The translations under genes were made by a program, and so were the position numbers. A stretch of 64,000 nucleotides of DNA from NCBI GenBank assembly GCA_977016875.1, contig CDRNST010000102.1, forward strand, positions 806,001 to 870,000, in the 5' to 3' direction. The stretch is from Pavona decussata. Taxonomy: Eukaryota. Of the stretch, positions 328 through 47,837 are shown in pieces (position 1 is the stretch's first letter; every line of letters starts with the position of its first letter). The notes beneath the pieces were generated by a model. It saw nothing but the letters and a program-made list of their open reading frames with translations, was not told the DNA's origin and searched no databases.

Positions 328-518
328 CCGGATATATCTTCTATGAACAATACGAGGAGAACATTCTTGGAAGAGAATCTGGTGCAAGAGTTTCCGATGA
401 TGAGCCCTTCTGTGGAAGATATTCCTTGAAAAATCCAACGATTATTTGGAGAGCCGGCTACTCAGCCTTCTCGATTGCCCAACCTCAAGATCCTTATGCG
501 ATCTCCAGATACAAGCAA
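328..518 (+). CDS. exon 1 in window (PKHD1L1-like N-terminal region)
   Basis: ttcttag acceptor; reads GYIFYEQYEE...EPFCGRYSLKNP; CAA/GTGAGT donor, phase 0. Confidence 0.85.
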
Positions 519-3953: not shown

Positions 3954-4024
<71 letters not shown>

Positions 4025-7000
4025 TAATAATAATAATAATGTTGATGATAATGATGATGATCACGATGATCATGATGATGACAATAATAATAATCATAAT
4101 TATCAGTCATAAACAATTTTTGTGTGTCAAGTAAAAACTTGATTGATTCGTTTTGCCTAAGAGGAATTCTGGTCAGCAGTATTTCAGAGCGCTATTTTGT
4201 AGCACTTGTCCCAAATCTTTCTCCGTTCGCTCGTTCATTCATTCATTCATTCATTCATTCATTCATTCATTCATTCATTCATTCATTAGTGGGTTGGTTC
4301 GTTCGTTTGTTCGTTCGTTCTTTCCTTCCTTCTTTCATTCATTTAATGTTTACTCGTGTTTGTTTCAGTTACACCGACAAAACTTGGCGCAAGACCGAAT
4401 GGTTTTATTATCAAGGATTTCCAAGTTGAAAAGAATGATCAAAACTGGACCATCAGTCTCCTTCCTGCAAACTGTGGTTCCCCTGTTCCACTGCTCGCTG
4501 TTGTGGACGCCATCTGGGGCAATAATAGTGGCCGTAATAGTGCTGTCTTTACTGCAAAAGGTCTTACCTCAAATGCCACAGTGACGCGAATACAAAAAGC
4601 TTCGCCTCGAGTCCGTGGAACGTTTAACATTACATACAAAGGAAAAGTTGTCAAAGGTGGGTGTCATTATTCAGTTTCCGAATACCTCAAACAACTTCGC
4701 AAACAGTAGTCTGAAATGTCAACCGTCTGCACCCCCTAACCCACAGGGGGCCACACCCCCTTTTGGGTTAGGGGGAGGAGACGGCTGACATTTCAGACTA
4801 CGTAAGTAGCAGCTTGCGAAAGTGGAGACGAATTTTACCTTAATTTACGTCAAGTTGCCGATGATCGCAAACAAAACTTGAGAGGTAAGGAATGTTCTAC
4901 CTTTTGCATCTTGTTTGCGACGATTTGGAACTAACGCAATGTTTACATAGAAAGAAAAAGTGATAAAAGATGGGTGATGTTAATTAGTTTCCAAATGCGC
5001 GAAACAACGTTGCAAATATTTGGCGATGGCTTATTCGCAAACAGTTTTTGTAACGCTAGAAACACCTTTTACGTTGATTCCCGTCGATCTCCGATGATTG
5101 CAAGCAAAACGCGTTCTACTTTTGCGTCGAGAGAAAACAACAACGTGGATACTATCACAGACTGTTTGTGATCAACCGTCGACCAGTTTTGAGCAATTGA
5201 GAAGTTCTGACGAATTAGGAGCTAGTACGAAACAATAAGATGGCGTCCTTTTTGAGACGCAAAGCCGGAGAGGCTAGGAAACCAAAAGAAAACGGTCAGA
5301 GGGCAAACACCAGGGAATTTTTTGGTGTGTATAAGCCGCTCGGTTGCCGAACTTCTGACCCTATTTCGCATCAACATTTATTTTTCCAATAGCCATTTTC
5401 AAGACCTGGTCTCCAAAGTACATCCCGTTTTCACATTTTCTGATCAATGCGATTTAAAAAAACTACACCCGTTTTCAAACTAAAATGATTCAAAACCCCT
5501 ACCCTAATCTGAGTAAACAAACTTTGTTTCGTGGTGCCACAACTGGCTCCAGTTGTTCAAAGAGTGGATAACGGTATCCAGCGGATAAAATGTATTGGTT
5601 GTAGTACATTTTAGCTTTCTACACTTTCCCCTCAGAAAAAAATGAATTTGTGAGAGGGGTGGTTTGGAAGAAGCAGAAAAAAATTGACACTTTGCCCCGG
5701 AAGTGGCCGTAAAGAAAGGAATATGGATCCAAGCCATTGAAACGAATAGTCCTATGTATTCTTACTTAGTCTTCTCGTTGCATTTACCAGATGTTCCCGC
5801 TAACATTTCCGAGGCACGTCTTAAAGATCGGTTAGAGGAAGAATTTGAAGAAGGCATCCTTGCCGTGGAAAGATCCGGGACATGCGCCGGCTTCCTATGG
5901 AAGGTCACGTGGCAGACAAGAGGCGGTGATCATCCTACTATGCAGGTCAGCGGTGACGGTCTCAGTGGTAATGACGCATCTGTAACAGTGCAGACCATTG
6001 TGAATGGCGGCTTGTTCTTGGATCCAATTCCTGGAGAGTTTTTGCGAATGCCGAAATCTTCAGGGCAGGTAGGTTACGCAGCTTGTCGTCACGCAACACC
6101 TCTCCCAAAGAATGTAGCCTTGCGTGACGACCAAGGTTTCCTTTCGATTGATGAAGACTGAAAAAGAAAGGAACTCGACAAATATTTTCCCAAAATGGAA
6201 CAAACAGGTTAATTTAATAAGGGTTTTATTACAATACCTCTTTTGCAAATTTGCCGACAGCTAGTGTGAGAAGGCCGAAAACTAGAAGTGTAGCAATATT
6301 CAGGGCAAACAACGAATCGTTTAGGTAAATTAGCTGTTTGGAAGACCCTTAATCCCCTATAATTTTCTAAAGGGAATTTTCACCTCGAACTTCTGTGATA
6401 AGGGACATTTAAGACCTATTGTTTTCGGATTGATTAGAATTTGGTTTCGGTTACCGAAGAAGGGTCAGCTAAGATTTTGAGAAAGGAAATAAGACCTAAG
6501 GTTTTCGAGAAATGGAAAAAATGCCCTAGTAATATTAATTTCGAAAAGACGCAAGTTCTCCTATAATGACCGAACAGATAAAATATTATAGCGCGGCCTG
6601 AAATGAACCTACAGAGCTTTAAAGGCACTCCAGATAGCCTAAAATTGCGTTTCAAAGGATTTGAGAGAAAGCTATCGTTGGGTGCCCCTGAATATTATCA
6701 TAGACACGTTTAGGGATCTTAAACAGCTATAACGGCAACGGAAACGAAAACGTCACTTGAAAATATAACTTCTGTGACTGTAATTCTGTAGGCTTTTTCG
6801 TCTAATTGTTTATTTATTTATTTACTTTTTTTTCAGGTGGTTGTGGTCGTAAATGACATTATCGGATCCTGCAACAACAACAATTGCTCGTTTAATTATT
6901 CTGCCAGTCACACCCCTCAGATCACCTCCATATCACCCCCGTCAGGTGCAGGCGGGCCCCCCGGTATTGGGACCGTTATCACTATTCGTGGCTCAGGATT

Positions 7001-10000
7001 TTCCACAGTAAAAGAAGAAAATGTTGTCACAATCGGTGGCTCTTCTTGTATCATCCAAACTAGCACCATCGACAACATCACGTGCCGAGCAGGTAAGTTG
7101 TCTTCTTATTTAGCTTTATTTACTTCAAGGTCAATATCGTTTTTTGCCTAACGGTTTACTGCGCCTTTCAATAACATGCGGACTCTGAAGTTCAAGATTC
7201 AACCAACCGTTACGCTTTCCACTATCATTGCATCCGACATAATCTCTTTACGACAGACAAATTCTCATCGTAGGCCTTATCCAATCATAAGTGGCGTCCA
7301 GTTACCGCTCAGTGACGCACCACATGTTCTTTATCACGGAATTTGTATATTTCTTTGTCAGATTACGGCCCTGGTGGAACTCATGAAGTCAGGATTTCCG
7401 TAAAAGGCAAAGGTTTGGCCGCTAATGATCAGCAACTCAACTTTACTTACGTCATCAGTGCGACTTCAGTTACTCCGTCCAGCGGAAGCACGGCGGGTGG
7501 AAGTGAAATTACCATATATGGCAGTGGCTTTGGAAACAGGATAAGCAGTGCCTCGGTCTCATTGGGAGGCTCTCCATGTGATATCATAAAGATCAATATG
7601 TCCCACATCACGTGCATAACAGGTGCTCATGCCGCCGGAAGTGTCACTGTGAGTGTATCAGTTGATGACAGCTCGACCACCGTTGCCAATGGTTTCCTCT
7701 ATGACGCTTCATTAAACATTCAAGTCACCAGCTTAAGCCCACTGGAGGGGAGGGTAAGCGGCGGTGACGTCATAACCATTTCTGGTTCCGGTTTTGTCAA
7801 CACGACATTGGTGAAAGTGGGAAACGAAAACTGCGTGATACAAAGTTGGTCACCCGGGCAGATAACTTGCGTTACACCACGTCACGCTCCAGGAAAATTT
7901 TCTGTCAAGGTTGTCACGCCAGGGAAAGGTTATGCCGTGATCCCTGAGCAATACAAAGAGTTTGAGTTCACATTTGTTGTGCACTCCATCTTCCCTCTGA
8001 ACGGCTCAGTAGCTGGAGGAACCCACGTGACCTTCATGGGACGAGGGTTCAACTGCAGCGAGTCACGCACTGTTATCACGGTACATGCCAAACCATGCAA
8101 AATAAGGGAATGTAACTCAACGCATGTGACTTGTGAAACAAAAGACATATTTGAAACCATCACAGTGAATAATACTGGATCCCATCCAGGTTAGTTAACG
8201 TCAACTATTTACATTTTATTTTCGTGCTAACACAATAGGCCATTTCCGGGGGTTGGCCTGCACCGTTTTGCAAGGTCTTGTTGGGAGGACATAAGAACGA
8301 ACACGGAAACATTGTTCCCAGCCCTAAAAGCAATGCAGCTGCAGGTTAAAAGGGTCCAGTAAAAATAGAGCTTTTGAAAGATGCAGGTTGACTGGATTCT
8401 CGAGTTGTTTTGAATCTCACTGTGAAAGCGAAGCTAAGTACAAAGCTTTTCATGTGAAAATCAGTGTTTTGCATATGAATGAAAACTAATTCTCCTTAAA
8501 AAAAAAAACCTATACACAAAGCCTCGCTTCCATACTGAGGTTCTAAGCAGCTCGGAAACGACCTATTCATTCCCCTTCAGACTACGTTAACCTCGGGACC
8601 AATCAGGAGCGTTTTGGTGCCGAATTCGTTTAGGCGTTTACACACAAAACATGAATCCGGAATGAAGAGTTTCGAGATTCATCAAACAGCCGTAAGCTAA
8701 ATAAGCAAAACACGGCGTTCGCGTCCGCAGATCGTTGATTTTCTGCTAAGTAAAAAATTTTAACTCGTTTCAAAATAACTTCCACCCTATTTCTTGTATT
8801 GGCCAGTTGACAAATGCGTCGATTCTTTTGACATCGTCTTACTTACCAGTCTCATTCCCGCAAGTCGTCATTTTGTACAGAATGTGGGCCAACTATGCTC
8901 TACAAGTATTTTCACATCGATCGTTTACCCTAGCAATTCGCACTTTCGATAGAATCTGAAGTATCTTTTCACATTACGGGTCTAAAATCGCCCGTACTCC
9001 GCACGCAATTCATGGTGTAGTAGAAACTTCCCTTCTCCGAGTAGGTTTATTTTAAGGACAAGGAACAAAAACTTAAATATGAAATAAATGATCACGAGTT
9101 GCCGTACTTTCTAATGTAAACCTTGTTCTTATTTTATCAGAGTTTGGACGTGGATACGAATGGTCTCCAAAGCACGTGACCTGTTACCAAGGTGACACCG
9201 TTGAGGTAGGGTAACACTTAACGGATGAAATTCCTTCTGTTAATTCATACAAATTTTATCATTATCCTTAATTTTTGCTAAAATTCAAAAGAGAGCATGT
9301 ACAACCCTTTCTTGAAAGGGACGGAAGAGAGAAGGACGATAGCTCCTTATACAGTGCACTAACGCAGTTTGTGACTACGCGGGAGAAGCATCTCTTAGCA
9401 AGGGCTATTGAAATCGAAAATCAAATTGGGGGTAACCAAGCATTTTTCAGAGATGATTTAAATACATAACTGTGTATGGCGTTTTTTTTACCATGTTTAT
9501 GCTTGATTATCTGTGAACATGCGCGGTAACCCCCAATTTCCTTTTCGATTTAAATAGTCCTTTGTAAGATCTTCTTTTCCCGCATATTCATAAACCGCGC
9601 AAAGGTACCCTTGACTTAGCTACCGTCACCGTCCTATAAGGGGCAGTGTCACTGATTTTTAGTGTGCCTTTGAATAGCGAAAAACTCATTTGTATCGATG
9701 GGAATGTTAAAATAATGATTCAGTAATGTTAACAATTGCCCTACGAGTATTCAAAAACAAGTATTTGTTATCTTTTGCTGTAGATGGCTTGGATGGAAAT
9801 GGATTACAACTTGAAAAAATTGACCAATTGTTTCAAATACTTCTTGCGGATTTTGGAGAAATTGCTAAAAAACTTATTTATAGTTACATCATTGGAGAAA
9901 TCAGTTAATATTTCCCTCCCGGTACTCAACGAACAATTTTATGTTAGAGAAAAGGTTCTGTTCTAAAGTTTTGACTAGCGTTGGTCAAAATACGGAAAAA

Positions 10001-20772: not shown

Positions 20773-20839
<67 letters not shown>

Positions 20840-35800: not shown

Positions 35801-38800
35801 CTCTTTCTTGCAGGTGGACCAAACATAACAGACAACTCTACTCTGCGTTATGACCAACTACAGGCACAACAGCAGGCCGAGGCTCCCAGTAACCTGTTCA
35901 GCTTCCTCATTCCCAACAGACTGGAGCTCTTTACCGAACCGAACGGAGGTAACGAGACTGTTCCCTTCACTATCCAGCCAAAACTCAAGCTGGTGGACAT
36001 CGATGGCAAGTTAGTGACAACCTTGGGTCATGGCTCGTTAAGCAACTGGACTGTGAGAGCCAGCATACTGAACGGAACAGGAGACCCCATGGCGGTGCTA
36101 GAGGGTAATGTCTCTGTAACGATTGTGGAAGGCTGGGCCAACTTCACTGATCTGAGCATCACTCATAATGGTACCGATTATAAGTTACTGTTTAACGTCA
36201 GTAAACCTGCGGCTTCTCAGTTTAACGCCACTTCGCAGTCGTTTGAAGTCAAGGAGAGGATTTTGTACTTCACCGTTTCCATTCAGCCAGACGACGCTAA
36301 TGAAACCGTTAGCTTCGGAAAACAGCCGAGAATTGAAGTCCGCGATGCTGCCAACGGAAAAATCGTAGACAACACAGGTTGGAAAGGAAGAAGGTGGCTG
36401 TTCACGGCTTCCATAGCTAACTCAGATGATAACAATGGGCATCTAAACGGAACTACAGAAGTGGAATTTGTTCAAGGTATTTTTGTTTTATTACTCACTG
36501 TACCCCTGGGGTGGGAGCATTCCCTATAATGGATTATACTGGGAGGGTCCACCTGGAAGGGGCACTGTTTACAGGCTGAAGGAATATTAAAGGGCGGAGA
36601 TTTCACGAGCCGAAGTAAAGGAAAAGGCAAGGAAAACTGTCAATTAGGTATTTAAAGGGGGCTTTCAAAATATCTCTAAAAGACCAGCCTACCGTAGGTA
36701 TATGAAAGGGGTACCGTTTGTTATGAAACGTGTATGAAAGGGTTACCTTTTCTTGTAACAAGTTCATTGCTATGTAGTGCTAGGAAAAGTGGTTTTAAAG
36801 ACAATTTGGCCTTTAGGGTTTTCTTGTGCCACTTATGAAAAAATTCCCCTCGGGTTTCCAAAGTTCTACTTATTATTGATGACACAGTCCCTATGGACGT
36901 GCTCTCGGTGTTTCAAACTGTTTTTCTTGTCAAGTCGAACAAACTTCGAGACGAATTATTCCCTTTAATAACAAACCCTACCTGAAAATGAGCCCTTACA
37001 AATCTAACATAAATCTAATGTTTGTGGTAGGTGTCGCCCAGTTTACAAATCTCAGTGTGGACATTTCCGGAGACAACTACATCCTAGCGTTACAGGCGTC
37101 AACTGTCCCATGGTCCCGCTACGCCTTTAGCGAAAACTCCTCAGCGTTTAACGTTTCAGAAAGACTGCTCTACCTTAAATTGGTTCAACAACCTGGCGAC
37201 TGCAATGATACTGTTATCTGCGGCAGTCAACCAATGTTGGAGGTAAGAAATGTATTCCCGGACACTATTGTCGACAACATCGGCTGGAGGGGAAGAACGT
37301 GGCAGATCAACGCAAGTATGGTTGGCGTGAGCAATTCTGTGCTTAACGGTACTGCGCTGCTGTCGGTACCAACATCAGGGAAGGTACAGTTTCACGACTT
37401 AAACTTCTACGACGTCGCACAAGGATACCAAATAAAATTCACTGTTATAACTGAGCCATCATCTTCATATTCTGGATTGTCCGTGATCTCGGAAACTTTC
37501 GACGTCTCCCCACGCAAATTCTACCTCGAAGTGATAACACAGCCTGGCAACGCCAACCAATCGGAGATCTTTGGTGTTGCCCCAGTAGTAGAAGTACGAG
37601 ATGTAGGAACGCGCATGCGCGGACACCCTCTGAAAGGTGATTGGTCAATAGCAGTGTCGCTCAAACCGTCACCTTTGAATGGAACACTGAGTGGAGAGCT
37701 AAACGTGACCGCTACGGACGAGAGGGTGGAATTTGGCAACTTGTCAATCTCTTTCTATGGTGTTGGATATGAACTTGTTTTCGTATCTAATTATGGACAC
37801 ATGGTAAGTAGAGGAATAAATGTACAATACTAAAGAAAATTAATTAATGCACCTTGAAGTGAGCGCGAATTTTCAAAAATAAACGTTAGTGTACCTTTAA
37901 TTTCTTGTGGCGTTATTTCCCGCGACCTAATTTGAGAACGGTGCCTCCTAATACAGCTGTATTTTTGGCGCCTTTTAAGACTATAGAATAAAAATGAGCG
38001 ATATAAAGACTGAACGACGTTCCAATGACTCCATGTCATCATTATCAAGTTCGAAATACATGGTGAAATTGATTATATATATAGTATCTAAAGTGTGGAA
38101 ATATTTAGGGAATAAACAAAGGAGTTAAAGTATTCATAACAATTGAATACTTTAACTCCCTTGTAAACTCCATAAATATTTCTACACTTTAGTAGTGGGC
38201 CATTTTCTTTTTGAATGCAGAATTTCCAATGCACTCTTTCTCGAAATAATACGAAATCTGAAAAAGCTAGCTTAATTTCCTTCATTTGGAGTCAATTGAC
38301 TGTTTTTTTTTTCTTAAATGTAAACATTTTTACAAGAAATAAATACCATCTTATTTCGTCCCCCATCTTAGTTGGATATTACAGTGTAATACATGGTCAA
38401 AAAAGAGGTCCTAAAAAGATGCTGTTCTGGTGCTTTTTAATTGTAACATCTAAATTCCAATTCAATACTTACAGCTAGTGTGCTTCTTTATTCTACAGGT
38501 ATACTCTCAGACCTTTGAAGTCAAATATGTAAATGACTATTCCCCAGTATTTGAGCCTTCAAATGGCTTTTACAACGCCACTATCTCTGAGGACGCTTCC
38601 GTCGGTGTATTTGTAACCACAGTAACGGCAACTGACCAAGACTCAGGTTCCCAAGGTGATGTTTTCTACTCCATTGTGGGTGGAAACACTGGCAACAAGT
38701 TCACTGTTGATGCTGTCTCGGGAAATATCACATCAATTGGAGAGCTTGACCGGGAAACAACTGCAGTATTTACGCTAACTGTGCGAGCGTCCGACGGCGC

Positions 38801-41800
38801 GGTGCCAGAAAAAGTACGGTATACGGACGGCACGGTGAAAGTTGTCATCTCCGATGTTAATGACAACGCTCCGTCATTTAACACGTCATCAATTGTCGCC
38901 AACGTTTCAGAGGATGTCAATGTTGGTGGCGTCATCATCACGCTTCAAGCTAATGACCCGGATGAGGGATTGAACAGTGAACTTCGTTATTCAATAACAA
39001 GCGGAAATGACGCTGGAATGTTTACTGTGGACAGTGTATCAGGGGAAGTAAAAGTAAATGTGTCATGTGATCTGGAAAAAGTGCCTAGGCCCGATTTAAT
39101 TTATTCCTTGAACATATTTGTTCAAGACCTTGGAACTCCAGAGAGCCTAAACACGAGTTTAGTGCTCAATATCAGCATCACTGCTGCCAATGAATTTACC
39201 CCGCAGCTTCTTCATGGCTCCTCGTTCAACTTTAGCTTTGCTGAGAATGCAGCTGTTGGTGATGGTGTTGTTGTGGTGCAGGTGAATGCTACAGACCAGG
39301 ACTATGGTGACCAAGGAAGAGTGTCTTATGTTATTAATTCAGGTAGGAATAAATCAATACGGCGGGGTTTTTTTTCTATTTCCCGCGCCCGATCTAGGGC
39401 TGCACAAAAATGCAGTTATTTGGGGTTCTTGGTTTCAATCCACAAATATGGTCAAAAGAAACCTATTTTCAAAGTATGGTACCTTCCGAAAGACCTTCCA
39501 TCAAGATTGGTCTCTTGGGGGATCCCAAGCCCAGACTCGATAGGGTGCAAAAGGCAGAGGGATCCTGGGTTGCTCGGTGTTAATCAACTATTAAAAAGAA
39601 AGTTAGTGGTCCGTCGACTCTTGAGACACCACAACTGGTCTCCTTGGGGTACCCGAGCCTGGATTTAGGTTGTAAAAAATGCCCTAACAGGACACAGGGG
39701 CTTCTGGTACTCAGATTTATCACGGGTTTCCTGCGAAAATGACTAAATGAAGCGTCAAGTGTTTAGAAAGTTCAGTGTGTCGTTTCTAGGTCACTGAAAC
39801 AACAATAAACTATCGTTATCAAGTTTGCCAATATTTATACTTGTGCTCGTGTTCACAGGTAACGACGAAGGCAAATTCAACCTTAGTGCCTCATCTGGTG
39901 AATTGAAACTCGTGGCTACACTCGACTACGAGACCACTCCGTCTTACATCTTGGTGATACACGCGCGTGATAATGACCACGCAGGAAACGTGAAGTTCGC
40001 GGTCTTCATCGTGAACGTGAACGTCTTAGACATGAATGACAACGCCCCTGCATTCTCTCAATCCCAGTACGAGGTGAACGTCGCAGAAGACGCGGTTATC
40101 GGCTCCAGTGTTTTCAAGTTCCTTGCCTCTGATCCCGATGGCGGTTTGAACGGACTCGTTTCTTATTCGCTAGATTTCAGCAATGCCAGCGAGTTCTGGA
40201 GTCTTAACTCGTCTACTGGTGAACTCACTGTTAATGGTAAGATAACGGGAAGAAAGAAGGGGTGATGTCGCGAAATCCACCTTGAAATTGTCGATTTTGG
40301 CATATATTTCATAGCTTAGCAATAAAAAATCTAAGAGTGCTTTCCATTTGCTAGAACTGGCCAGCCAGATCAGTCAGTCGTTGATGAGCTGGTACTACAA
40401 AATCTTGAAAAATAAACACTCCGAAAATGGCACACCGCCGCTATTTTGAAGAAATTGGAAGGACTAGAATAAGACTAAAATAAAACTTATTCTTCAAATT
40501 GGTGCATTCCGTTTACGAACTGACCGATGTGGCCGGCCAGTTCTTACAAATGGAAAGCGTCCTAGGAAATTCTTCTGTTCCTGCAGACTTTTTTGCTACT
40601 TTCAACTGGCGCCTTGATTAACTTCTAAGCTTGTATCTGATAATTAATCGAGTTAGCCCATCTTCGAACAACCGGTAGGTAGGGATAGTGGGAAATTTAA
40701 TTTACTCCCTTTTTCATGATAGATTATGGGGCAGGCAAATGCTTCATGCCAGGATCCTTGTACATCAACTCTAAATTTATATGATACAAGCATCAATTAC
40801 CATGCTTACTGTTAAAGACCTTCTAGAAACAATTCGACAAGGGTGGTCATCACTTTAAGTTGTAATCATACCTTTACTAAAATAATCACAATCCCTGTTT
40901 CCTTTTATTAGCCTCACTTGACATGGACAGCAGACACATTTCCACATGGACGCATACGTTAATCGTTATAGCAAAGGATGCCGGAACACCAATGCTTCAC
41001 TCCAACACTACACTTATAATCCGCGTTCTCCTTACCAACGAATTCGCGCCAAGCTTCGCAGCTTCAGATGTGTCAGTGACGGTCAGTGAAGACATTGCTG
41101 ACGGAAGCGTTATTTACCATGCAAATGCCACTGATGCGGACTTTGGATCAGACGGGGAAATACGATACAGTATTACAAGCGGGAATAACGACCTGAAATT
41201 CTTTATCAATTCCCTCACCGGTAAAATAACCACTCTTGCAGCACTGGACCGTGAGTCTCAAGGCATATATAACCTTGTTGTCGAAGCAAAAGACCAATCA
41301 CAGTCAAGCAAAAAGACAGGAACAACAACTGTTCATTTGAGCTTGAGCGATGTGAATGACAATGCTCCTAGCTTCGCCAACAATTATTACTCTACGGGCG
41401 TAGATGAAAATGTAGCAGTTGGTGGCGAAGTCTTCACCGTTAGAGCCACAGATCCTGATCTTGGAACAAACGGGGACCTTGTCTATTCTATTGCAAGCGG
41501 GAATGACCTGGGTTTCTTCAGCATTGAGTCAAATCAAGGCATCATTCGCGCTGCTAAGACCCTGGATTTAGAGACTCAGAGCCATGCAGCTGGCCGCACT
41601 TACCACTTGGTCATATTTGTTAAGGATCAAGGCTCCCCACATTCCCTTAATAACTCTGTGCCTGTGACTATCACTGTTCAAAGTGTCAATGAATTCCCTC
41701 CCGTCTTGGAACACAGTGATAACCAAGTCGTGGAACTCATCGAAAACGCGACCCTGTCTTCCGCGGTGTTCGATGTGAATGCAACTGATAACGATTATGG

Positions 41801-44800
41801 AGATGAGGGGGTTTTGACTTATTCTATCACTGCTGGAAACAGTTTGGGACATTTTACCATTAACAATGTCACAGGTAGGTGGAGTAACCTTGTGGTTATT
41901 ACAAATTGTAACTTAAACGCAACATCCAGTTTTTTATGAACCTCTTGTCAGTGGTATGTATATAAAGCAACTCTTTTTTTTTTTAACCAATACTGATTTT
42001 TACAGTATCTGTCAAAATATCTGCGCGCTGATTGGCTCGTAGTTATTGTCTACGGTACAGACAATAGATCAGATGTAACGCGAGGGGCTTTTTCAACGGA
42101 AGTTAAAGCCAATTCGGCTTGTACTTTTCCCATGTTATTGTAACAAAAATCGACGGCAGTTTTCTACGGTCTATACTCCTATAGACCATAAAATAACGCC
42201 ATAAAATGTTCAAAACTTGTAGGGCAAGTGAAACCATTCCACTTGAGTTTTGAACATTTTATGACGTCATTTTATGATCTATAAGAGCATAGACCATTGA
42301 AAACTGCCGTCGATTTGTTAAATACAACATCTTTTGATCACAAACTATTATCCTAGCGGGTGTACTACCAAAAAGTACTTATACTCATAATATTTTATTA
42401 TCGCTAGGCGTCATCAGATTGGCGAAGGAGTTGGACTTTGAAACAATCAGTCAACACAACCTGGTAATCACAATAACCGACAACGGTCAGATTTTGAACC
42501 AAAGAAGACAAGTCACTGTTAATGTCCAGGTACGAGTCATCAACATAGACGACGGTGTCAAGTACACAGCCCAGGTCCGAATGTTACAGACATACATTAC
42601 CTCTCCAGTCAATCCTGCTAGTTTGGCTGGCGTTCCTCAGAAGTCTGCTTTGGAAATACGTCTGGTGTACGAAAACGGAACCTCGGTGGACATAACTAAA
42701 GAATTAAACCGCTACACAGTGGATGGCACTTCAAAATCCAACAACCTCTTTAGTGTCGCGACAACTGATGGCACTCCTTTTGTCGTTGCTAACAGTAACG
42801 GTGTGACTGGAATAGGCCAACTTCTTGTTCACGTGACAAACGTCCAGACTGTCGAGGTCAATGTAACCGTCGTAGGGAGCAGCTCCCTTAGTATCAAATC
42901 TGTGACGTACCCTGGCGCTTCTGAAGTCAGTGAACTCAAGCAAATTATCCCTGGACTATTTCAGAGAGTTTTGCTCAAAGTTCTTCTTAACCTGACAAAT
43001 GATCACCAGGTAGACGTTTCCATCTCGGTGAATACCTCGTTTGTTTTGACAAATGCACAGCAAGTTGGAGGTAACTTCCTATTTGGACCTGTTCCACGGA
43101 ACCTTTTCTCGATCTCAGGGAACGGCTTGACTGGCATCGTTTCAATTCAAGTAGCCTTTGCTCAGAGTCTTTATGCGAGTGTCAATCTGACACTGTCTTC
43201 AACAGTCCTTGAAATAGTCGCAATAACCCGTTTTGGCTTGGAAAATGTCAACACGACTCTGAGTGGTATTGCGATGGTGACAACCGCATCGCCGTTTGCC
43301 GAGATGCAAATGAAGGATGGCTCGGTCCATGTTCTCGACAACTTTACAATGTACAGTGGCTTGCTCAGGTTCAACTCTAGCGACCCCGATGTAGCATCAG
43401 TAGATTCAGCTTCTGGTGTTGTTACTCTGCTCTCGGACAGTAGTTCCCCTGTAACCATCACAGCTTTTGTTCTTTCAAATACAAACATAACAGCGACAGT
43501 TGCGGTCTACTGCAATCTGGATCCCGGTGTTGGTGAAGTCGACATCGGGGCCAAAGAAGGGCCAGCTATTCCTTTGCTAGCTGTAAATGAAATTTGGCGA
43601 TTGCCTATAAGGATGAACCCTGGAACACTCGGCATATTAGCCGTGCACGTGGAACTTTGGTTCAGCACTAGCGATGTACGGGTGGATAACGTCATTACCG
43701 ATCTTCCATACTCATTGTCTGGGAATACGGTACATATATTCGGGCCCATCACAGAATCTAATGCACTCTCAGAAAACATCGCCGAGGTTGTGCTGACATC
43801 TCTAAAAAATGGTGTTCCTCAAGTCAATTATCATGCCTTCAGAACAGTTAATAAAGCGCTCACACCCTTGCCTACTAAGTCAGTAAAATCTTGCTCAGAT
43901 GTCGTACGAGGTGATATCGACTTAGATTGCACATTTGACATTGTCGATGTCGCTTTTATCAATGCCTACATTGCTTCCTCCAAGGCTCAATTCACTGACA
44001 GTCTTGGAGCACAGATGAAGGCCGTGTCCTCTTCTCAGAAATCAGCGATGGATGTCAACTGGAACGAAGCAATAGAGAATAACGACGCCATTTTCTTGTC
44101 TTTCATCTTTCTGAAAAAGGCAAAGTTTGTAACAGAACTGACTTACCAGCTTCCCAATCACGAAAGTAGTTCCTCGGACAAGTGTGGCTTACAACTAGCA
44201 ATCAAACTAGCTAACAAAGATGGGTCACCAACCTTGTCTTCGCAAACAGAAGCATACTTCCTCGTTTCGCATTCTGCCGTAAATGTTGCTGAGCAGTTAA
44301 GCAAAACAACGTTTACCGCAGGCACTAAAATAACTGTGCAGGGAAGCACGCCTATACAAGGGCTGATTAAAGCTAAATATGAAGACGGCAATTTCTTCAT
44401 TGCTACTGAGAAGTCAGAGCTAGAAGCAAGCGACGTTGGAGTCTCCATTGTTCAAGATGTTTCCTTCAATGGACTGAAATATATTGCTTCGATGTTTTTG
44501 GCCTCCAATCTTGTATCGACCGGTGCAGTAGATAGTACCTGGGCGAAACGTCAGGCAAGTGACGGCTTCGTACCACAGCGGAAACTACAGTTCTCGGAGT
44601 CCACGGCAAGATGTGTCGATCCGCTTGTCACGGTCAACGTGGAAATTATTTTTGATGGCGATTATGACAAGATCGTCAAGGGCAAAGAAGAGCAGTTTGA
44701 GACGCGTTGCGTTACCACACTATCAGAATATTACCCCGAGACAACTATAACAAATTGCAAGGTCAGAAAAGGAAGCATTTTGGCTTCATTCAACATGACA

Positions 44801-47800
44801 ATGCCTGGATCAAAACAAAATACAACACTCGCTAAACTATGGGAGGATGTTAGCAAAGGTATGACACTCAATTTCAATGGAGCAACAATGACGACCTTAC
44901 CACGCATGCAGGTTGATGGAAAGGATTATTCCAAGACACCTGTGAAGACACCTGAAGATGAAACGCGAATGCCCGTCTACATCATCATCATCGCTTGTGT
45001 GGCAGGCTTTGTCGTGATTTTGATTGTTGTAATCATAATTTACTGCGTCTATTGGCGAAAAGGAAGTACTGGAAAAATCAATCCGTCACCGCCCAACACA
45101 CCAGAGTACAGCGGAAAAGGGCATTTAGAAGTAGAGTCCAAATACGTCACACACAGTGCGAGTCCATCGTTGGTTTCGTTGCCGGCCTGGACTGAAGGCA
45201 CCCCTCAGTTTAAGCGTCCTAGTCCCTCAATGTTAAGGGGCAATGTGGAACCAGCATTTGAAGATAGAGAGGAACATCTCCCGGATTCTCAGGTAACTTC
45301 CTTTTTCTGTTATGAATCTGGGGAAAGGTCATTCCCTAAATGCCATTGACAAGGAACTCACCGCACCCTTTTAATGTTAAAATGCTTCCTTTTAAATATT
45401 TCATTGTTTTCAGGCTTTTAATTCTTTGTTTTATAATTGGTACCTGCCAAAGCGGTACAACCATACCCTATCACCAATCTATTAATACGACCAAAATTAT
45501 ATGGTCTATACGTTTCTTTTTTGAAATTTCTCTGATTAAGAGAAGTTCCCGGTTTGACACAGGGTGCATGTTTTTCCACGCTTGATACCGGTCAAAGTTT
45601 GGCCACGCTTGAAATCAGTTTTACTTATTTCACTGCGCTTGAAATTGGTTACATGTTTACCCGCGCTCCACAACCATCTATGTTTGTTTCCGCTTGATAT
45701 AGACTGTATTGTTTCTTTGCTTGACACTTTTTGCATGTTTAATCTACGATAGACACCATTTTTATGCTCTTCCGCTCCAATTGGGTGATTTATCGCGCTA
45801 AACAACTCTGTTTTTCAGCGGTCGAGTTTTAATTCTGAGATTTTATTACGGCAATTTGTGTTTGCGACCATTGGCCTCTGTACATATTGATTGTTTGTCT
45901 ATCGCATCTTTTCACAGAGACCGACACTATCAAAGGAGGATTCAGGTGACCTCCCAAAGACTCTTCTAGCGTTCCCTGTGGATTCAAATATAAAGCGTCT
46001 CCTAACTCCCATACTTGAACAAAAAGCAATTGTGCCACAATCGCCAGCCTCTTCTCCTGTCGACCAACAACCGCCAAGTGAACCTGATACAGAGTCGACG
46101 GATCGTGAAGAGTCTCCTGACATTGCCTCGACAGCGGCCAGTGTTCAAAGCCCAGCAGTGTCTCCATCTGGATTATGGCCACACTGTGAGGATGCTGGAG
46201 AGACCGAAGCGTTGGACGATACATTTGATGAAGATGGAATGCCCGAGGGTATCAGACAGGAAGCTCTGCTACGTCGACGAAGAGCATCGTCAATAGATTC
46301 TGATCATGAACGAACCTTCTTTTCTGAGATGCCAGGTGTCTTAACGGAACAGAGTAAGTTTTTGGAGTTTTATATTATTCCATAAGCCTTTCCTGTCACC
46401 AGACTGGCCGAAAAAAAAATAGATAGTAGGCACAGGGGTGCAACAGAAAACTCGCGCCGGCGCTAGGAATGACTTGCCTTGACGTGATCCTCCTCGCACC
46501 ATGTGGCACGTAAGGCTGAAACCAGAGTTTTCCATATCTCTCAGTCGGTTGCAATATTCTCGACTTCATTCCATGTCTAAGATGTTGTTTTCATTTCGGC
46601 CGCGATGTCCTCCTCCATGTTTCATCTGCGCAGTCTTTCCTGTTTGATGAATAGTCCTGACGTTTCATAGTAATATGGTAATCTGCTATTATGGGGTTGC
46701 TAGCCCACGCGAAATCTTTTCATTACTCGAGATACTGAATCTCTTTAAGGAAAACAAATATGATGTTTAAACGTGGTTTTATTGTTCTAAAGCTAGCGCA
46801 AAACTCCGCCGTAATTCACTTACCACTAGACAGTGTCCTTGTCGTTGAAACCTGAACCTCAAATGTCAAACGGGACGGCAGGATTGGAGTCACTTGACGT
46901 TTAGACGTTTGCAGTTTGCGGGAAACGAGGAAAAACTTCAATCTTTAAGTCCCTATTGTTATTTTTCTTCCTGCAGGCTCCAATGTACAGCGAACTAAGA
47001 TGCAAGTCAAGGTAGTACGCCCCAATCCCGAGTTGGGCGTCCTTGCACACATGGCCGGAGTAGTCGACGTCAATCTATCCGGGACCTTAGATGAAATGCG
47101 CCAAGACATCAACCGTGTGTTGCCTGGATACCTCGGCTCAGTTAGATATTTGCTGTTATCACGCAATTTCAAGATTATTGACCCAAGGACAGAGAATCAG
47201 CTAGTTGTATCGGCGGTATATAAGAAGTCAATTTATGTGAAAGTGTTCCACGGTGCAGGTGAGTGAGCTGATTAACAATTGTTTACTCCTTAGAAGCGCT
47301 TTAACTTTAATACAGGACCGGTTGGTGATATCAACTTTTCACGTGTTTTTCTTTTTTAACCATTTTTGAATATCCCAAAGTGTTTCATATATATTAAAAG
47401 AAAAGTTCAAGGCATGGCCTTAGCTCCCACGAGTCCCCCACGAGTCTCCCGTAGGTTCGACTCCTGATAGGACCACTCGGATTTCCTTTTTCCGAGTATG
47501 CCGGATTCCTAAAAATATAGTATCTTGAAATGGCTCCTTTCCAAAATTGCAAAAAGACAAGTTGTTGTGAACTTCCCTGTATAAAATAAGCTCTCTGTTG
47601 TTGGCGTATATTAAAAACTAACACTGCCTTTCATTTGTCGTGACAGAAAACTGCGAGTATTTCTGCCAGTGTGGCAAGGTGGCGTATATCTGGTGCCCAA
47701 GGTGTAACGTTCAGGGGTACTGTGGGGAAGATTGTCGCGGGCGAGATGAGAGCGAGCATGCAAAGCTGTGCAGCAGTAACAGAGAAAGAGCCATGCAGGG

Positions 47801-47837
47801 TGCTCGCACAAGACGCTTATCCAAGACGAGAAGATAA
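328..47837 (+). CDS. PKHD1L1: 5'-truncated giant multidomain receptor: fibrocystin-L (PKHD1L1)-like ectodomain + cadherin repeats + TMEM132/Ig-like + cohesin-dockerin + SEA-like + TM + MYND finger. 28 exons: 328-518, 1720-2011, 4369-4656, 5791-6068, 6837-7092, 7362-8189, 9141-9205, 10215-10345, 11276-11394, 12337-14454, 15233-18515, 19621-20378, 20969-21187, 28694-28909, 29658-29897, 30171-30407, 30963-31168, 31979-32231, 33626-33805, 35814-36476, 37031-37803, 38499-39342, 39859-40236, 40912-41874, 42408-45292, 45918-46353, 46977-47258, 47647-47837
   Basis: All 27 introns are GT-AG with matching phases; the exon sum of 17,573 nt equals 2 nt plus 5,857 codons ending in TAA. PKHD1L1 hallmark peptides: WSSPYTWG, QAFRLGRYPIHFH, INPSDCVDMDCDA, GDYRIPK, NGPQDHGWCLGYTCQERISTF. 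The symbol applies to the N-terminal two-thirds only. Confidence 0.88.
639..1508. mobile_element. MITE-like repeat interrupted by the 847-1434 element; related copies near 2970-3270 and 55071-55323
   Basis: Ends AGAACGGTTTTCAATTGAG / TCAATCGAAAACCGCTC; internal AACCAATC and GCGCGGGAAAACG motifs shared with the 55071 copy. Confidence 0.6.
847..1434 (-). mobile_element. non-autonomous Kolobok-like DNA transposon with THAP-like fragment
   Basis: About 145-bp imperfect TIRs (AGTGCCTATGAAGCGAAAA / TTTTCGCTTCATGGGCACT), flanked by TTAG and TTAA; internal minus-strand RGRYCVAG...SCQNRSFT resembles a THAP N-terminus. Confidence 0.7.
1720..2011 (+). CDS. exon 2
   Basis: catgtag acceptor; FCFAYKG...DIFIDNVWIG; G/GTAAGG donor. 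Confidence 0.85.
2158..2770 (-). mobile_element. PIF/Harbinger deletion derivative
   Basis: About 79-bp perfect TIRs starting AGCCGCGGCCACACGAGCG; TAA TSD at 2155-2157 and 2771-2773; retains WVRPWLAKRKEQGFYHQLLTEI...LRMT, typical of Harbinger transposase N-termini. Confidence 0.88.
3407..3680. repeat. dispersed repeat, second copy at about 21728-21980
   Basis: Shared block TTGACCTATC...GATAAAACATCACGTGCAGTGGTTTTAAAACCCGAT...AAAAAACTCGCAGC. Confidence 0.8.
3946..4100. repeat. (AAT)n microsatellite grading into (GAT)n
   Basis: Direct reading. Confidence 0.97.
4234..4320. repeat. (ATTC)n / (GTTC)n microsatellite
   Basis: Direct reading. Confidence 0.95.
4369..4656 (+). CDS. exon 3
   Basis: tttcag acceptor; ARPNG...RIQKASPRVRGTFNITY; G/GTGGGT donor. 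Confidence 0.85.
4707..4800. mobile_element. 94-bp palindromic mini-MITE
   Basis: TAGTCTGAAATGTCAACCGTCT...AGACGGCTGACATTTCAGACTA with inner CCCCCTAACCC / GGGTTAGGGGG arms. Confidence 0.7.
5791..6068 (+). CDS. exon 4
   Basis: ttaccag acceptor; GGLFLDPIPGEFLRMP; CAG/GTAGGT donor. Confidence 0.9.
6301..6690. mobile_element. MITE with CAGGG termini
   Basis: CAGGGCAAACAACGA / TCGTTGGGTGCCCCTG; AATATT on both sides. Confidence 0.55.
6837..7092 (+). CDS. exon 5, IPT/TIG repeat
   Basis: tttcag acceptor; TPQITSISP...ITIRGSGF; G/GTAAGT donor. Confidence 0.9.
7362..8189 (+). CDS. exon 6, three IPT/TIG repeats
   Basis: Repeated PxxGSxxGGxxITIxGxGF motifs; AG acceptor, G/GTTAGT donor. Confidence 0.92.
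9141..9205 (+). CDS. exon 7 (small; start of cupredoxin-like insert)
   Basis: tttatcag acceptor; EFGRGYEWSPKHVTCYQGDTVE; GAG/GTAGGG donor; not in the ORF track. Confidence 0.85.
9331..9638. mobile_element. degenerate palindromic MITE
   Basis: Arms GGGCTATTGAAATCGAAAATCAAATTGGGGGTAACC / GGTAACCCCCAATTTCCTTTTCGATTTAAATAGTCC; boundaries approximate. Confidence 0.55.
9640..10019. mobile_element. TTAA-type (Kolobok-like) MITE, related to 33225-33592
   Basis: GGGGCAGTGTCA / TGACAGTGTCCCT ends, followed by TTAA; shared internal GGAATGGATT..AACTTGAAAAA-type motif. Confidence 0.6.
10215..10345 (+). CDS. exon 8 (cupredoxin-like insert)
   Basis: ttcgcag acceptor; WKWSGQEFSKVSYNVHQT...GFRSGSSRTGSFKH; AG/GTACAG donor, phase 2. 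Confidence 0.82.
10594..10770. repeat. dispersed repeat, inverted copy at about 32950-33116
   Basis: ATCAAACACGAGACACAGTGTTTCA...CACCGAGAAGAGAGTTG is the reverse complement of 33050-33110. Confidence 0.8.
11276..11394 (+). CDS. exon 9 (end of cupredoxin-like insert)
   Basis: ccgtag acceptor; FLAPGVYYYAGSGSVLMKGVIKV; G/GTATCA donor. Confidence 0.85.
12337..14454 (+). CDS. exon 10, seven IPT/TIG repeats and start of G8 domain
   Basis: 747-aa ORF; TIG motifs; ends YVDVWSSPYTWGNKPPPVE. Confidence 0.93.
15233..18515 (+). CDS. exon 11, G8 domain 1, parallel beta-helix, G8 domain 2
   Basis: 1115-aa ORF; GQTILLDQDTP, RAEVGLLTRNV, GRYPIHFH, second AEVGLLTRNI; AG/GTGAG donor. Confidence 0.95.
18751..18922. 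mobile_element. palindromic MITE (AATAGGCCATTT-type end)
   Basis: GGCGTCATTTT..AACTACCAGAAT / ATTCTGGTAGTT..AAAATGACGCC arms. Confidence 0.6.
19621..20378 (+). CDS. exon 12, second beta-helix region
   Basis: ttccag acceptor, phase 2; SYVRGNAIHDGFNPGIGVFGT; G/GTAACT donor. Confidence 0.92.
20775..20838. repeat. (TTA)n microsatellite
   Basis: Direct reading. Confidence 0.97.
20969..21187 (+). CDS. exon 13
   Basis: caccag acceptor; GGRIG...YPAING...DILHPVDVR; G/GTTTGT donor. Confidence 0.88.
22674..28480 (+). mobile_element. 5.8-kb Kolobok-like DNA transposon in intron 13
   Basis: TTAA TSD at 22670-22673 and 28481-28484; about 590-bp TIRs (GAGCGGCTG.CTGAGAATATCGAGAACTCGCGGTCAA...); decayed transposase exons inside. 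Confidence 0.88.
24230..24953 (+). pseudogene. decayed spliced DDE transposase fragment
   Basis: An exon ending at 24621 (YMAVVKGVCTESMIAGQDEVKNNPGYIVNGE/GT) splices in phase 0 to 24880-24953 (CVITDARHDSSRSAAHTTVSAISF/GTAAGT); upstream frameshifted C..C/C..H remnants. Confidence 0.65.
28694..28909 (+). CDS. exon 14
   Basis: gcttag acceptor; INPSDCVDMDCDARRQLLIRDLDGSF; G/GTAAAC donor. Confidence 0.92.
29658..29897 (+). CDS. exon 15
   Basis: cacag acceptor; GDYRIPK...YRMLVIESLDPDTETRRLSPVAL; not in the ORF track in this frame. Confidence 0.9.
30171..30407 (+). CDS. exon 16
   Basis: GYVNLLNGPQDHGWCLGYTCQERISTF; G/GTAAGT donor. Confidence 0.92.
30963..31168 (+). CDS. exon 17
   Basis: GANYFDR...VRGSEPVDIR; CAG/GTAAAG donor. 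Confidence 0.9.
31979..32231 (+). CDS. exon 18, contains furin-type site RRRRKR
   Basis: DDFFKENLLNNLIALLGI...RIRIV...IEIGDPP. Confidence 0.9.
33225..33592. mobile_element. TTAA-flanked MITE
   Basis: TTAA-AGGAGAAGTATCA ... TGAGACTTCCCCT-TTAA. Confidence 0.7.
33626..33805 (+). CDS. exon 19
   Basis: Phase 1-1; PIPEPVDPTGGVRATNETG continues as GPN in the next exon. Confidence 0.85.
33936..34988. mobile_element. composite MITE containing a nested palindromic element (34108-34716)
   Basis: TAGAGAGATT / AATCTCTCTA ends; direct duplicate GACCACGTGACCATGTTTA at about 33964 and about 34792; nested arms TCAAGAAAATTAA.GCA.GGGT.TCTAGTTATT / AATAACTAGACACCCATGCCTTAATTTTCTTGA. Confidence 0.6.
35087..35417 (-). 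mobile_element. tRNA-derived SINE-like repeat flanked by about 65-bp direct repeats; deleted relative at about 47412-47502 (+)
   Basis: Minus strand TAGCTCAGTGGTAGAGCATCCG...AGGTTCGACTCCTG; TATATGAAATAA.TGTGATGGTAT...GAATGAGAATGA..TGTATTATTCT repeated at 35087 and 35347. Confidence 0.75.
35814..36476 (+). CDS. exon 20, Ig-like modules 1-2
   Basis: PFTIQPKLKLVD...GWANFTDLSI and SFGKQPRIEVRD repeats. Confidence 0.9.
37031..37803 (+). CDS. exon 21, Ig-like modules 2-4
   Basis: Repeats QPGxxNxT/S...QPxxEVR...FxxLxI; ATG/GTAAGT donor. Confidence 0.9.
38499..39342 (+). CDS. exon 22, cadherin repeats 1-3
   Basis: ATDQDSG, LDRE, DVNDNAP, NEFTP motifs. Confidence 0.93.
39859..40236 (+). CDS. exon 23, cadherin repeats 3-4
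   Basis: LDYE, DMNDNAP, ASDPDGG motifs. Confidence 0.92.
40331..40565. mobile_element. MITE, second copy at about 63442-63675
   Basis: GCTTTCCATTTG..AGAACTGGCC / GGCCAGTTCT.ACAAATGGAAAGC arms; shared CACTCCGAAAATGG core. Confidence 0.65.
40912..41874 (+). CDS. exon 24, cadherin repeats 4-7
   Basis: NEFAP, LDRE, DVNDNAP, NEFPP motifs. Confidence 0.93.
42147..42316. repeat. long inverted repeat (part of a MITE)
   Basis: AAATCGACGGCAGTTTT...ATAAAATGTTCAAAAC / GTTTTGAACATTTTAT...AAAACTGCCGTCGATTT. Confidence 0.75.
42408..45292 (+). CDS. exon 25: end of cadherin 7, TMEM132/BIG-like modules, cohesin-like, dockerin, SEA-like, transmembrane helix (about 44975-45052)
   Basis: 976-aa ORF; LDFE; SSDPDVASVD; GDIDLDCTFDIVD...DVNWNEAIENND; VRKGSI; VYIIIIACVAGFVVILIVVIIIYCVY followed by WRK; CAG/GTAACT donor. 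Confidence 0.9.
45918..46353 (+). CDS. exon 26, low-complexity cytoplasmic segment
   Basis: tttcacag acceptor, phase 0; S/P/E/D-rich; RRRRASS; A/GTAAGT donor. Confidence 0.8.
46977..47258 (+). CDS. exon 27, putative ubiquitin-like (beta-grasp) module
   Basis: ctgcag acceptor, phase 1; G/GTGAGT donor. Confidence 0.8.
47647..47837 (+). CDS. terminal exon, MYND-type zinc finger
   Basis: CQCGKVAYIWCPRCNVQGYCGEDCRGRDESEHAKLC; stop TAA at 47835-47837. Confidence 0.85.

Follow-up and report, generated by a model that had tools for sequence, protein, structure and literature searches.

A 64,000-nucleotide stretch of the Pavona decussata genome (contig CDRNST010000102.1, positions 806,001 to 870,000; G000:C102:806001-870000), called the window throughout, carries a chain of 29 exons on its forward strand between 328 and 47837. 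The chain comprises 17,660 nt (~5,885 codons), every border is AG/GT, and its first in-frame stop is the TAA at 47835-47837. Overall, the data make it probable that a genuine, transcribed gene lies for the most part within the window and encodes a type I membrane protein of ~6,400 residues, a cnidarian long form of fibrocystin-L (PKHD1L1 family), working by the mechanism proposed below. At its 5' end the gene extends beyond the window: homologue residues 1-~570 map upstream, to exons at G000:C102:794028-804505 (1.5-12 kb away), and adding these ~570 codons gives a predicted whole protein of about 6,400 residues. An earlier note on the window, made from the letters alone, had described one continuous spliced frame of about 5,850 residues that was still open at its 5' end. 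This frame is reproduced here, and exons upstream of it were found. The four junctions that the note had singled out (37803/38499, 41874/42408, 45292/45918 and 47258/47647) all recur in the present model, and 37803/38499 is also seen in RNA contigs.

The exon chain was built with our own splice-aware gene-finder script and then corrected against homologue alignments, with AG/GT borders and phase checked across the whole chain. Homology searches, which in the genome covered 602 Mb, used single exons as queries; the joined model served for phase arithmetic only. Extra exons proposed by the gene-finder at 14780-14837, 14923-15110, 24237-26091 and past 47258 were rejected because homologue alignments are contiguous over those introns and simpler junctions preserve phase. 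Along the + strand, Pfam places TIG, G8, CEMIP beta-helix and Beta_helix matches in exons up to 20.4 kb, Cadherin in exons at 38.5-42.5 kb and a weak MYND finger at 47.6 kb. The exons are:

328-518, +: first in-window exon, IPT/TIG region (aligned to Glandiceps fibrocystin-L-like residues 570-627; AG/GT, phase)
1720-2011, +: exon (tblastn, Clytia and Actinostola homologues; AG/GT)
2194-2280, +: exon, weakly supported (gene-finder only; phase preserved)
4369-4656, +: exon (tblastn, three homologues)
5791-6068, +: exon (tblastn, Actinostola, E 2e-24)
6837-7092, +: exon, TIG (Pfam TIG 5.6e-12)
7362-8189, +: exon, three TIG (Pfam TIG 1.7e-50)
9141-9205, +: small exon (weak tblastn, E 0.09, collinear with the Glandiceps protein P0181; phase)
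10215-10345, +: exon (tblastn 1.7e-5)
11276-11394, +: exon, weakly supported (gene-finder; closes a 41-residue gap in the homologue alignment)
12337-14454, +: exon, seven TIG (Pfam TIG 1.7e-88)
15233-18515, +: exon with G8, CEMIP-type right-handed beta-helix and second G8 (Pfam G8 1.4e-58 in two stretches, CEMIP_beta-hel 4.4e-50)
19621-20378, +: exon, second beta-helix (Pfam Beta_helix, CEMIP_beta-hel)
20969-21187, +: exon, conserved fibrocystin-L C-terminal region, followed by a 7.5-kb intron (tblastn)
28694-28909, +: exon, conserved region (tblastn 4e-19)
29658-29897, +: exon, conserved region (tblastn 6e-22)
30171-30407, +: exon, conserved region (tblastn 3e-29; matches every family member)
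30963-31168, +: exon, conserved region (tblastn 5e-18)
31979-32231, +: exon, first half of SEA-like domain (phmmer matches to nearly all tested fibrocystin-L, vertebrates included)
33626-33805, +: exon, second half of SEA-like domain (tblastn 7e-11, Glandiceps; RNA splice to 35814 in runs X1 and X2)
35814-36476, +: exon, stalk ("bridge") modules of ~100 residues (RNA junctions on both sides)
37031-37803, +: exon, more stalk modules (RNA junctions; module in 795 library proteins)
38499-39342, +: exon, last strand of a stalk module, then extracellular cadherin (EC) repeat 1 to part of repeat 3 (Pfam Cadherin 4.7e-46; RNA junction; junction sequence read)
39859-40236, +: exon, cadherin repeats (Pfam Cadherin 5.7e-20)
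40912-41874, +: exon, three cadherin repeats (Pfam Cadherin 1.7e-57)
42408-45292, +: large exon, end of last cadherin, beta-rich region, Big_2 Ig, cohesin, dockerin, beta-sandwich, juxtamembrane domain, transmembrane helix and start of tail
45918-46353, +: exon, cytoplasmic low complexity (AG/GT, phase; no Pfam match)
46977-47258, +: exon, cytoplasmic module before the zinc finger (labelled ubiquitin-like in the earlier note)
47647-47837, +: last exon, MYND-type zinc finger with CxCG first pair, stop TAA at 47835-47837

The 7.5-kb intron is spanned by junction 21187/28694, which preserves both phase and homologue contiguity.

The one-transcript structure was examined by comparing RNA contigs from four runs of four studies with 33400-39399. 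In run X2, a single 15,708-nt contig (depth 36) covers 33622-33804, 35813-36474, 37029-37802 and 38498-39345 (record positions 7778-10244), with three introns excised at GT..AG and an extra 7.8 kb upstream and 5.5 kb downstream. Junction 33805/35814 is present in X1 and X2, and junctions 36476/37031 and 37803/38499 are present in X1, X2 and X6. Because exon 33626-33805 is fibrocystin-L-specific, with matches in family members from several phyla, and is spliced to the stalk and cadherin exons, this is direct evidence of a fused mRNA. The X2 alignment stops at 33622 and 39345 because the letters there, ACAG and GTA, are shared with the exon ends at 32231 and 39859; its ends therefore fit junctions 32231/33626 and 39342/39859. 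Within the introns, 35400-35800, 36800-37000 and 38200-38400 have no depth in X1, X2 or X6. By length arithmetic, the X2 contig would start near exon 10215 and end ~330 nt beyond the stop. A whole-genome search found this gene and one intron-bearing paralogue only; for the 3.3-kb G8 exon, the sole exon searched, it turned up no intronless copy able to mimic a spliced contig. The observations support a real, expressed gene: one gene, one transcript. As a separate matter, the 33805-35814 intron and its surroundings contain high-copy repeats (33400-33600, 33800-34200 and 34600-35400), in which the summed RNA-contig depth reaches thousands to hundreds of thousands, with many rearranged joints, as against 6-36 in the flanking exons.

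The N-terminal part of the predicted protein has the composition of fibrocystin-L. A long IPT/TIG array is formed by Pfam TIG matches in exons 6837-8189 and 12337-14454 (E down to 1.7e-88), and it is followed by two G8 stretches with right-handed beta-helices of the CEMIP/TMEM2 kind (CEMIP_beta-hel in 15233-18515 and 19621-20378). Exon 15233-18515 alone is 46-54% identical to fibrocystin-L from many phyla. Hemichordate, urchin, frog, Clytia and anemone proteins form collinear tblastn chains across the ectodomain, and the family tree places the gene with cnidarian members (support 99). The C-terminus departs from the vertebrate type, a single transmembrane helix with a very short tail: the helix is present at 44972-45058, but a tail of ~380 residues with a MYND finger follows it. 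Judged by sequence, the short tail is a mark of vertebrate fibrocystin-L members only, since ambulacrarian members are also long-tailed.

A module matrix was drawn up by comparing 13 exon pieces with ~130 retrieved homologues in phmmer. The stalk consists of ~4.5 modules of ~100 residues. The module is without a Pfam family, yet 795 library proteins carry it, with as many as 26 copies in one protein. A single one of the stalk modules has matches in nearly all fibrocystin-L tested, including most vertebrate proteins (~residues 4030-4100 of 4,210). At window 36269-36430 (residues 152-205 of exon 35816-36475), the stalk module also matches RSL, the fucose-binding lectin of Ralstonia, in its blade repeat (PDB 4csd, 7e7u; phmmer E 4e-8, two stretches), with the common motif P-x-I-x-V-...-NGKI-...-W-x-G-x-x-W. 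This likeness may hint at glycan binding, or it may merely reflect a common strand motif.

The following features lie within the exons from the SEA-like domain onward:

32111-32128, +: furin-type polybasic site RRRRKR, in a loop of the SEA-like domain
43205-43522, +: Big_2-type Ig-like domain (VIA-align Z 8.7-9.6 to LigA, intimin and SbsC; model residues 266-371)
43526-43867, +: cohesin-fold domain (VIA-align Z 9.4-10.1, root-mean-square deviation 2.4-3.1, 98-108 residues; residues 373-486)
43913-44113, +: dockerin-like helical segment (Pfam Dockerin_1 E 0.004, 17.7 bits against a cut-off of 22.9)
44126-44596, +: beta-sandwich domain (AlphaFold2 predicted local distance difference test (pLDDT) mostly 80-90; no fold match found)
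44624-44929, +: juxtamembrane alpha/beta domain, SEA/MAD12-like by secondary structure only (Glandiceps homology; strand-helix pattern)
44972-45058, +: transmembrane helix (hydrophobic run MPVYIIIIACVAGFVVILIVVIIIYCVYW; modelled as helix)

The membrane-proximal end of the protein has relatives that lack cadherins. The juxtamembrane domain is 36% identical to residues 4222-4318 of a Glandiceps fibrocystin-L-like protein (E 5e-15) and lies upstream of the transmembrane helix. In phmmer, the piece 44600-45292 finds counterparts at 1e-6 to 1e-22 among amphioxus, mollusc, brachiopod, nemertean, bryozoan, hemichordate and urchin proteins, and none among vertebrate proteins. The MYND finger scores 19.4 bits with Pfam zf-MYND (E 0.0012; cut-off 22.7). 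Its ligands can be read in the translation, with a first pair CxC instead of CxxC (expected pattern C4-C2HC), and its exon aligns to the C-termini of the Glandiceps and Lytechinus proteins (P0181 and P0182), both with a precomputed PF01753. In these two proteins, which have no cadherins, the alignment passes from the stalk exons directly to 44639-44929 and 47547-47771. The tails of coral, Clytia, Glandiceps and Lytechinus all finish in the same finger, starting F/L-C-x-C-G, and the last strand of the module in exon 46977-47258 is kept in the Glandiceps, Lytechinus and Clytia tails. Elsewhere the tails are shorter: 191 residues and no finger in amphioxus, 80-120 residues in protostomes and 3-12 in vertebrates.

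Read in this way, the N-terminal ~4,400 residues together with the juxtamembrane domain, transmembrane helix and tail are fibrocystin-L's own frame. Because the juxtamembrane domain and MYND tail occur in cadherin-free relatives, the cadherin-cohesin-dockerin block is an internal cassette. In the earlier note, fibrocystin-L was taken to be joined end to end with a cadherin that supplied the tail; the hemichordate and urchin proteins contradict that arrangement, and "chimera" is apt only for an inserted or retained cassette. The note's count of more than 2,000 extra residues after the usual end of the protein is borne out, with ~2,470 codons remaining 3' of the SEA-like domain. Its account of these modules as extra to the vertebrate protein is correct for the cassette, which no vertebrate member has, but not for the one stalk module that vertebrate PKHD1L1 shares.

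The cassette spans ~38520-44600 (~1,460 residues) and comprises ~7 EC repeats, a beta-rich region, the Big_2 Ig, the cohesin fold, the dockerin-like segment and the beta-sandwich. The tandem EC repeats are recognized by Pfam Cadherin in three exons (4.7e-46, 5.7e-20 and 1.7e-57), with DxNDN, LDRE and DxD motifs readable. The region after them is beta-rich and poorly modelled. For residues 385-740 of the large exon, AlphaFold2 with 29 aligned sequences gave pLDDT 80.7 and a predicted template-modelling score of 0.78. For the cohesin-fold domain, the best 11 VIA-align rows are all cohesins and Foldseek returns cohesins at probability 1.00 with modest E-values; Pfam gives no Cohesin and no TMEM132 match on the large exon. 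The predicted membrane protein unites a cohesin domain with cadherin repeats. Dockerin_1 is found in 22 of the 27 coral orthologues of the large exon (59-93% identity to the window; best 7.3e-5), and four helices are modelled in the window segment. Foldseek with an 885-residue model returned generic multi-Ig chains only (TM-score ~0.1), a shape search of the ESM Atlas gave nothing informative, and a protein search with Clytia residues 4930-5801 retrieved FAT-type cadherins only, via one cadherin repeat. The ESM Atlas feature search returned Dockerin, Big_2 and Cohesin clusters at 0.80-0.87, which serve as leads only.

Another locus in the same genome helps to identify the cassette. C36:4283001-4303000, on the minus strand (L015, L016), encodes a giant cadherin in open reading frames (ORFs) of 1,677 and 2,111 residues, with at least 9 EC repeats, a Pfam Cohesin domain over the cut-off (5.9e-9) and the Ig_TMEM132 4th to 6th domains twice. 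By its domains it is a bona fide cohesin-bearing cadherin of the coherin/hedgling type in a coral. Residues 63-740 of the large exon are collinear with its ORFs (BLASTP 2e-32; hhalign 99.7%, E 1.5e-26), the cohesin-fold domain of the window aligns to its Pfam-significant Cohesin, and the motif GDIDLDCTFDIVDV of the dockerin-like segment aligns to GDTDGNCIFDIRDV of the C36 gene. In hhalign the window exon aligns downstream of the C36 TMEM132 Ig triple; in the window, one Big_2-type Ig precedes the cohesin. The cassette is a paralogue of the repeating unit of this giant cadherin. The label "coherin-like" given by the earlier note is supported by the collinearity with a cohesin-bearing cadherin. 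Of its other domain assignments, the fibrocystin-L ectodomain, extra Ig-like domains, cadherins, cohesin-dockerin, transmembrane helix and MYND stand, with Dockerin_1 and MYND scoring below the Pfam cut-offs; the SEA-like and ubiquitin-like labels are provisional, and the TMEM132-like Ig triple was not detected.

Similar proteins occur elsewhere. The paralogue at C37:1655115-1693541 (+ strand, L010-L014; 28-64% identity) has G8/beta-helix, conserved region, SEA-like domain, stalk, cadherins, cassette, juxtamembrane domain and MYND in the window order. Its G8/beta-helix part has many more introns, against a single 3.3-kb exon in the window gene. A Clytia hemisphaerica RefSeq "fibrocystin-L-like" protein (P0211, 5,801 residues) contains TIG, G8, beta-helix and Cadherin and is collinear with window 1.7-45 kb. 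It shares the stalk, cadherins, the post-cadherin part of the cassette, juxtamembrane domain, transmembrane helix and a Cys/His-rich C-terminus starting FCACG; it differs in that identity is only 25-48%, its zinc finger is not called by Pfam and its annotation is automatic. In the Logan contigs L004 and L005, which cluster with a sea anemone in the tree, ORFs for TIG, G8, stalk and cadherin follow one another at gaps of <~250 nt. The architecture is common to other cnidarians and stands in databases as automatic models only. A literature search found no paper describing a fibrocystin-L with cadherin domains, and the supplement of the TMEM132 paper (PMC6030884) has nothing on TIG or G8. The earlier note, which knew of no described protein with this architecture, agrees with the literature searched, but the Clytia model, the C37 paralogue and the sea anemones have the same form.

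A more divergent case emerged when stalk exon 37033-37803 was compared with 1.84 billion representative proteins. On an ENA contig of 810 kb, a single uninterrupted ORF encodes P0015, which has 4,686 residues with ten TIG, two G8, two beta-helix and two Cadherin matches; 170 nt downstream of it, a second ORF encodes further cadherins and a dockerin. It has five relatives, ~60% identical to it. The locus, which is eukaryotic (L003:10001-24061; ENA ERZ20067936, contig ptg000100l), is one 14-kb uninterrupted ORF, against ~25 exons in the coral, and neighbouring small genes are split. This would reflect either extreme intron loss in the gene or a very different intron regime.

Three further observations concern other parts of the window. 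A (TAT)n / (TTA)n microsatellite at 20764-20843, in the intron directly before exon 20969, yields poly-Tyr, poly-Leu and poly-Ile open frames. An interspersed repeat of ~220 bp at 70-289 has at least 77 genome copies at ~90% identity, frequently as tandem pairs or triplets (C327, C320, C35), and looks like a short interspersed element (SINE) or a miniature inverted-repeat transposable element (MITE). Past the stop, at 48500-63500 on the + strand, the gene-finder chained further open frames (for example 51828-52505, in a 302-residue frame with no Pfam match), which suggests another + strand gene 3' of this one.

The foregoing bears on two other explanations of the locus. One would split it into two adjacent genes that have been misread as a single gene, the first a canonical fibrocystin-L that stops near 33.8 kb and the second a coherin-type cadherin from ~35.8 kb, with "MVISACLTFLFLAG" as its signal peptide. 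An ATG-led hydrophobic stretch does occur at 35775-35813, a 2-kb repeat-rich intron lies before it, and vertebrate PKHD1L1 terminates soon after the corresponding point. However, the stretch consists of a polypyrimidine tract and a CAG acceptor, and X1, X2 and X6 show no RNA depth over it or over 35600-35799; spliced contigs in two runs connect 33805 to 35814, which contradicts separate genes. There is no transmembrane or stop exon after the SEA-like exon, the stalk modules belong to fibrocystin-L in all phyla, P0015 holds both halves in a single uninterrupted ORF and the C37 paralogue retains the order. The earlier note had named transcripts that terminate before exon 22, with an independent promoter and signal peptide for the cadherin part, as a finding that would overturn its proposal; what is seen at the start of the stalk exons is the silent stretch and the splice just described. 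Two misread genes are, on this evidence, barely credible. The other explanation accepts the long mRNA but regards it as a read-through or conjoined transcript, the main products being a short fibrocystin-L and separate cadherin isoforms made through alternative ends. The contigs are silent on transcript starts, ends and isoform ratios, and internal polyadenylation is frequent in long genes. Set against this, no candidate terminal exon with a transmembrane helix lies between 33.8 and 35.8 kb, the in-frame architecture has been retained over cnidarian divergence and after duplication, and X2 depth is even over the SEA-like, stalk and cadherin exons (34-36, weak evidence). We consider read-through very unlikely.

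The preferred reading, a single long gene, also has points that weigh against it. Three exons are weakly based (2194-2280, 9141-9205 and 11276-11394; gene-finder or a match at E 0.09), and the first exon and signal peptide were not located in the upstream region examined. MYND and Dockerin_1 both fall under the Pfam cut-off in the window sequence. The TMEM132-type Ig triple was not detected in the window gene, and Ig_TMEM132_4th and 6th each appear in 1 of the 27 orthologues, under the cut-off. No full-length read is among the RNA contigs, the reach from TIG to the 3' untranslated region following from length arithmetic only, and the contigs are also compatible with shorter isoforms ending before the stalk. 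The runs themselves were labelled "RNA?" by guess; the excised introns nevertheless identify spliced RNA as their source.

A different matter is whether the cassette was inserted or inherited. If it is ancestral, the first animal fibrocystin-L had cadherin, cohesin and dockerin, bilaterians lost them, and the coral form is primitive. Consistent with this, the divergent P0015 group (P0015 and its five relatives) has cadherins after the stalk and lies beside cnidarians on a long branch, and tail length falls in steps from the cnidarians and ambulacrarians to amphioxus, the protostomes and the vertebrates, so that reduction is the trend of the family. Opposing it, the P0281 group (non-bilaterian-like) and all bilaterians are without the cassette, and the position of the P0015 group has a Shimodaira-Hasegawa-like approximate likelihood ratio test (SH-aLRT) support of only 88 in a midpoint-rooted quick tree. 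An ancestral cassette is thus a possibility that we doubt but take seriously.

For the single long protein of the preferred reading, a mechanism can be proposed from the order of its parts. The R-x-[KR]-R site in the SEA-like domain is aligned in 11 of 12 homologues (Clytia, anemone, hemichordate, urchin, amphioxus, lamprey, frog, marsupial, abalone, Lingula and others); it is weakened in ENAx (RKRE) and absent in the P0015 ENA group. The protein is probably cut here, upstream of the stalk, into a distal fibrocystin-L part and a membrane-bound part. By analogy with fibrocystin (PKHD1), which is reportedly cut at a polybasic proprotein-convertase site and then shed in a Notch-like manner, a proprotein convertase would cut RRRRKR in the secretory pathway. 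The resulting distal fragment of ~4,400 residues would be either kept on the membrane-anchored stalk or shed from it. Ca2+ would stiffen the stalk via the putative cadherin linkers, and the putative cohesin and dockerin could clasp each other or a partner. Force or ligand sensed by the distal beta-helix and TIG part might then be passed to cytoplasmic partners via the MYND finger.

In vertebrates, PKHD1L1, a protein of hearing and kidney, is a coat protein of hair-cell stereocilia that has almost no cytoplasmic part and is required for normal hearing. Because it sits on stereocilia, a receptor role is proposed for the coral protein by analogy: we tentatively suggest, at somewhat less than even odds, that its most likely role is as an adhesion, coat or mechanosensory receptor of the apical surface or cilium, its output mediated by MYND. 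The earlier note's suggestion of an adhesion, mechanosensory or glycan-sensing receptor remains conjectural. A bolder version would make the ancestral eumetazoan fibrocystin-L a furin-cleaved, cadherin-stalked receptor with a cohesin-dockerin clasp and MYND tail, vertebrate PKHD1L1 its stepwise-truncated remnant, and the cnidarian form the maker of Ca2+-dependent links in ciliary/stereovillar mechanoreceptors. We think this unlikely; if true, the cnidarian protein would unite what vertebrate hair cells divide between coat protein and tip-link cadherins.

Comparison with known systems delimits what is particular to the coral protein. With vertebrate PKHD1L1 it shares the IPT/TIG array, a pair of G8 plus beta-helix units (46-47% identity over 1,100 residues), the conserved C-terminal region, the SEA-like domain together with its polybasic site, one of the stalk modules and the single transmembrane helix at the C-terminus. 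The vertebrate protein differs in being without the cassette, without detectable juxtamembrane similarity and without MYND in its tail of 3-12 residues, and in its length of ~4,200 residues against ~6,400. The Glandiceps talaboti (P0181, 4,619 residues) and Lytechinus pictus (P0182, 4,782 residues) proteins have all of vertebrate PKHD1L1 plus two stalk modules, juxtamembrane domain, transmembrane helix and a ~250-residue tail with a CxCG-type MYND. In them, the stalk runs directly into the juxtamembrane domain and the 1,460-residue cassette is absent. Fibrocystin has a polybasic proprotein-convertase site in its membrane-proximal ectodomain, as here, where cleavage is predicted; unlike in PKHD1, the membrane-bound product in the coral would be a ~2,000-residue cadherin with a MYND tail. 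Cohesin domains in eukaryotes were earlier reported from choanoflagellate and sponge cadherins and TMEM132 (PMC6030884). With the premetazoan cadherins of the coherin type (Nichols et al. 2012, cited in PMC6030884) and with the C36 cadherin, the coral protein has in common a series of cadherin repeats and, after it, a beta-rich region, a cohesin and a dockerin-like segment. Those cadherins have no fibrocystin-L part as far as testable, and C36 has the Ig_TMEM132 4th to 6th domains, which the window gene is without.

Together, the cnidarian form and the intermediate hemichordate/urchin form show an earlier state of the family, in which a long tail bore a MYND protein-binding finger and a conserved juxtamembrane domain was present. 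This provides a testable reduction-or-gain series across animals, and the MYND tail points to candidate binding partners. The coral gene would also offer a concrete case of a cohesin-dockerin pair within an animal receptor and, for cadherin evolution, of a coherin-type unit reused in an unrelated receptor frame.

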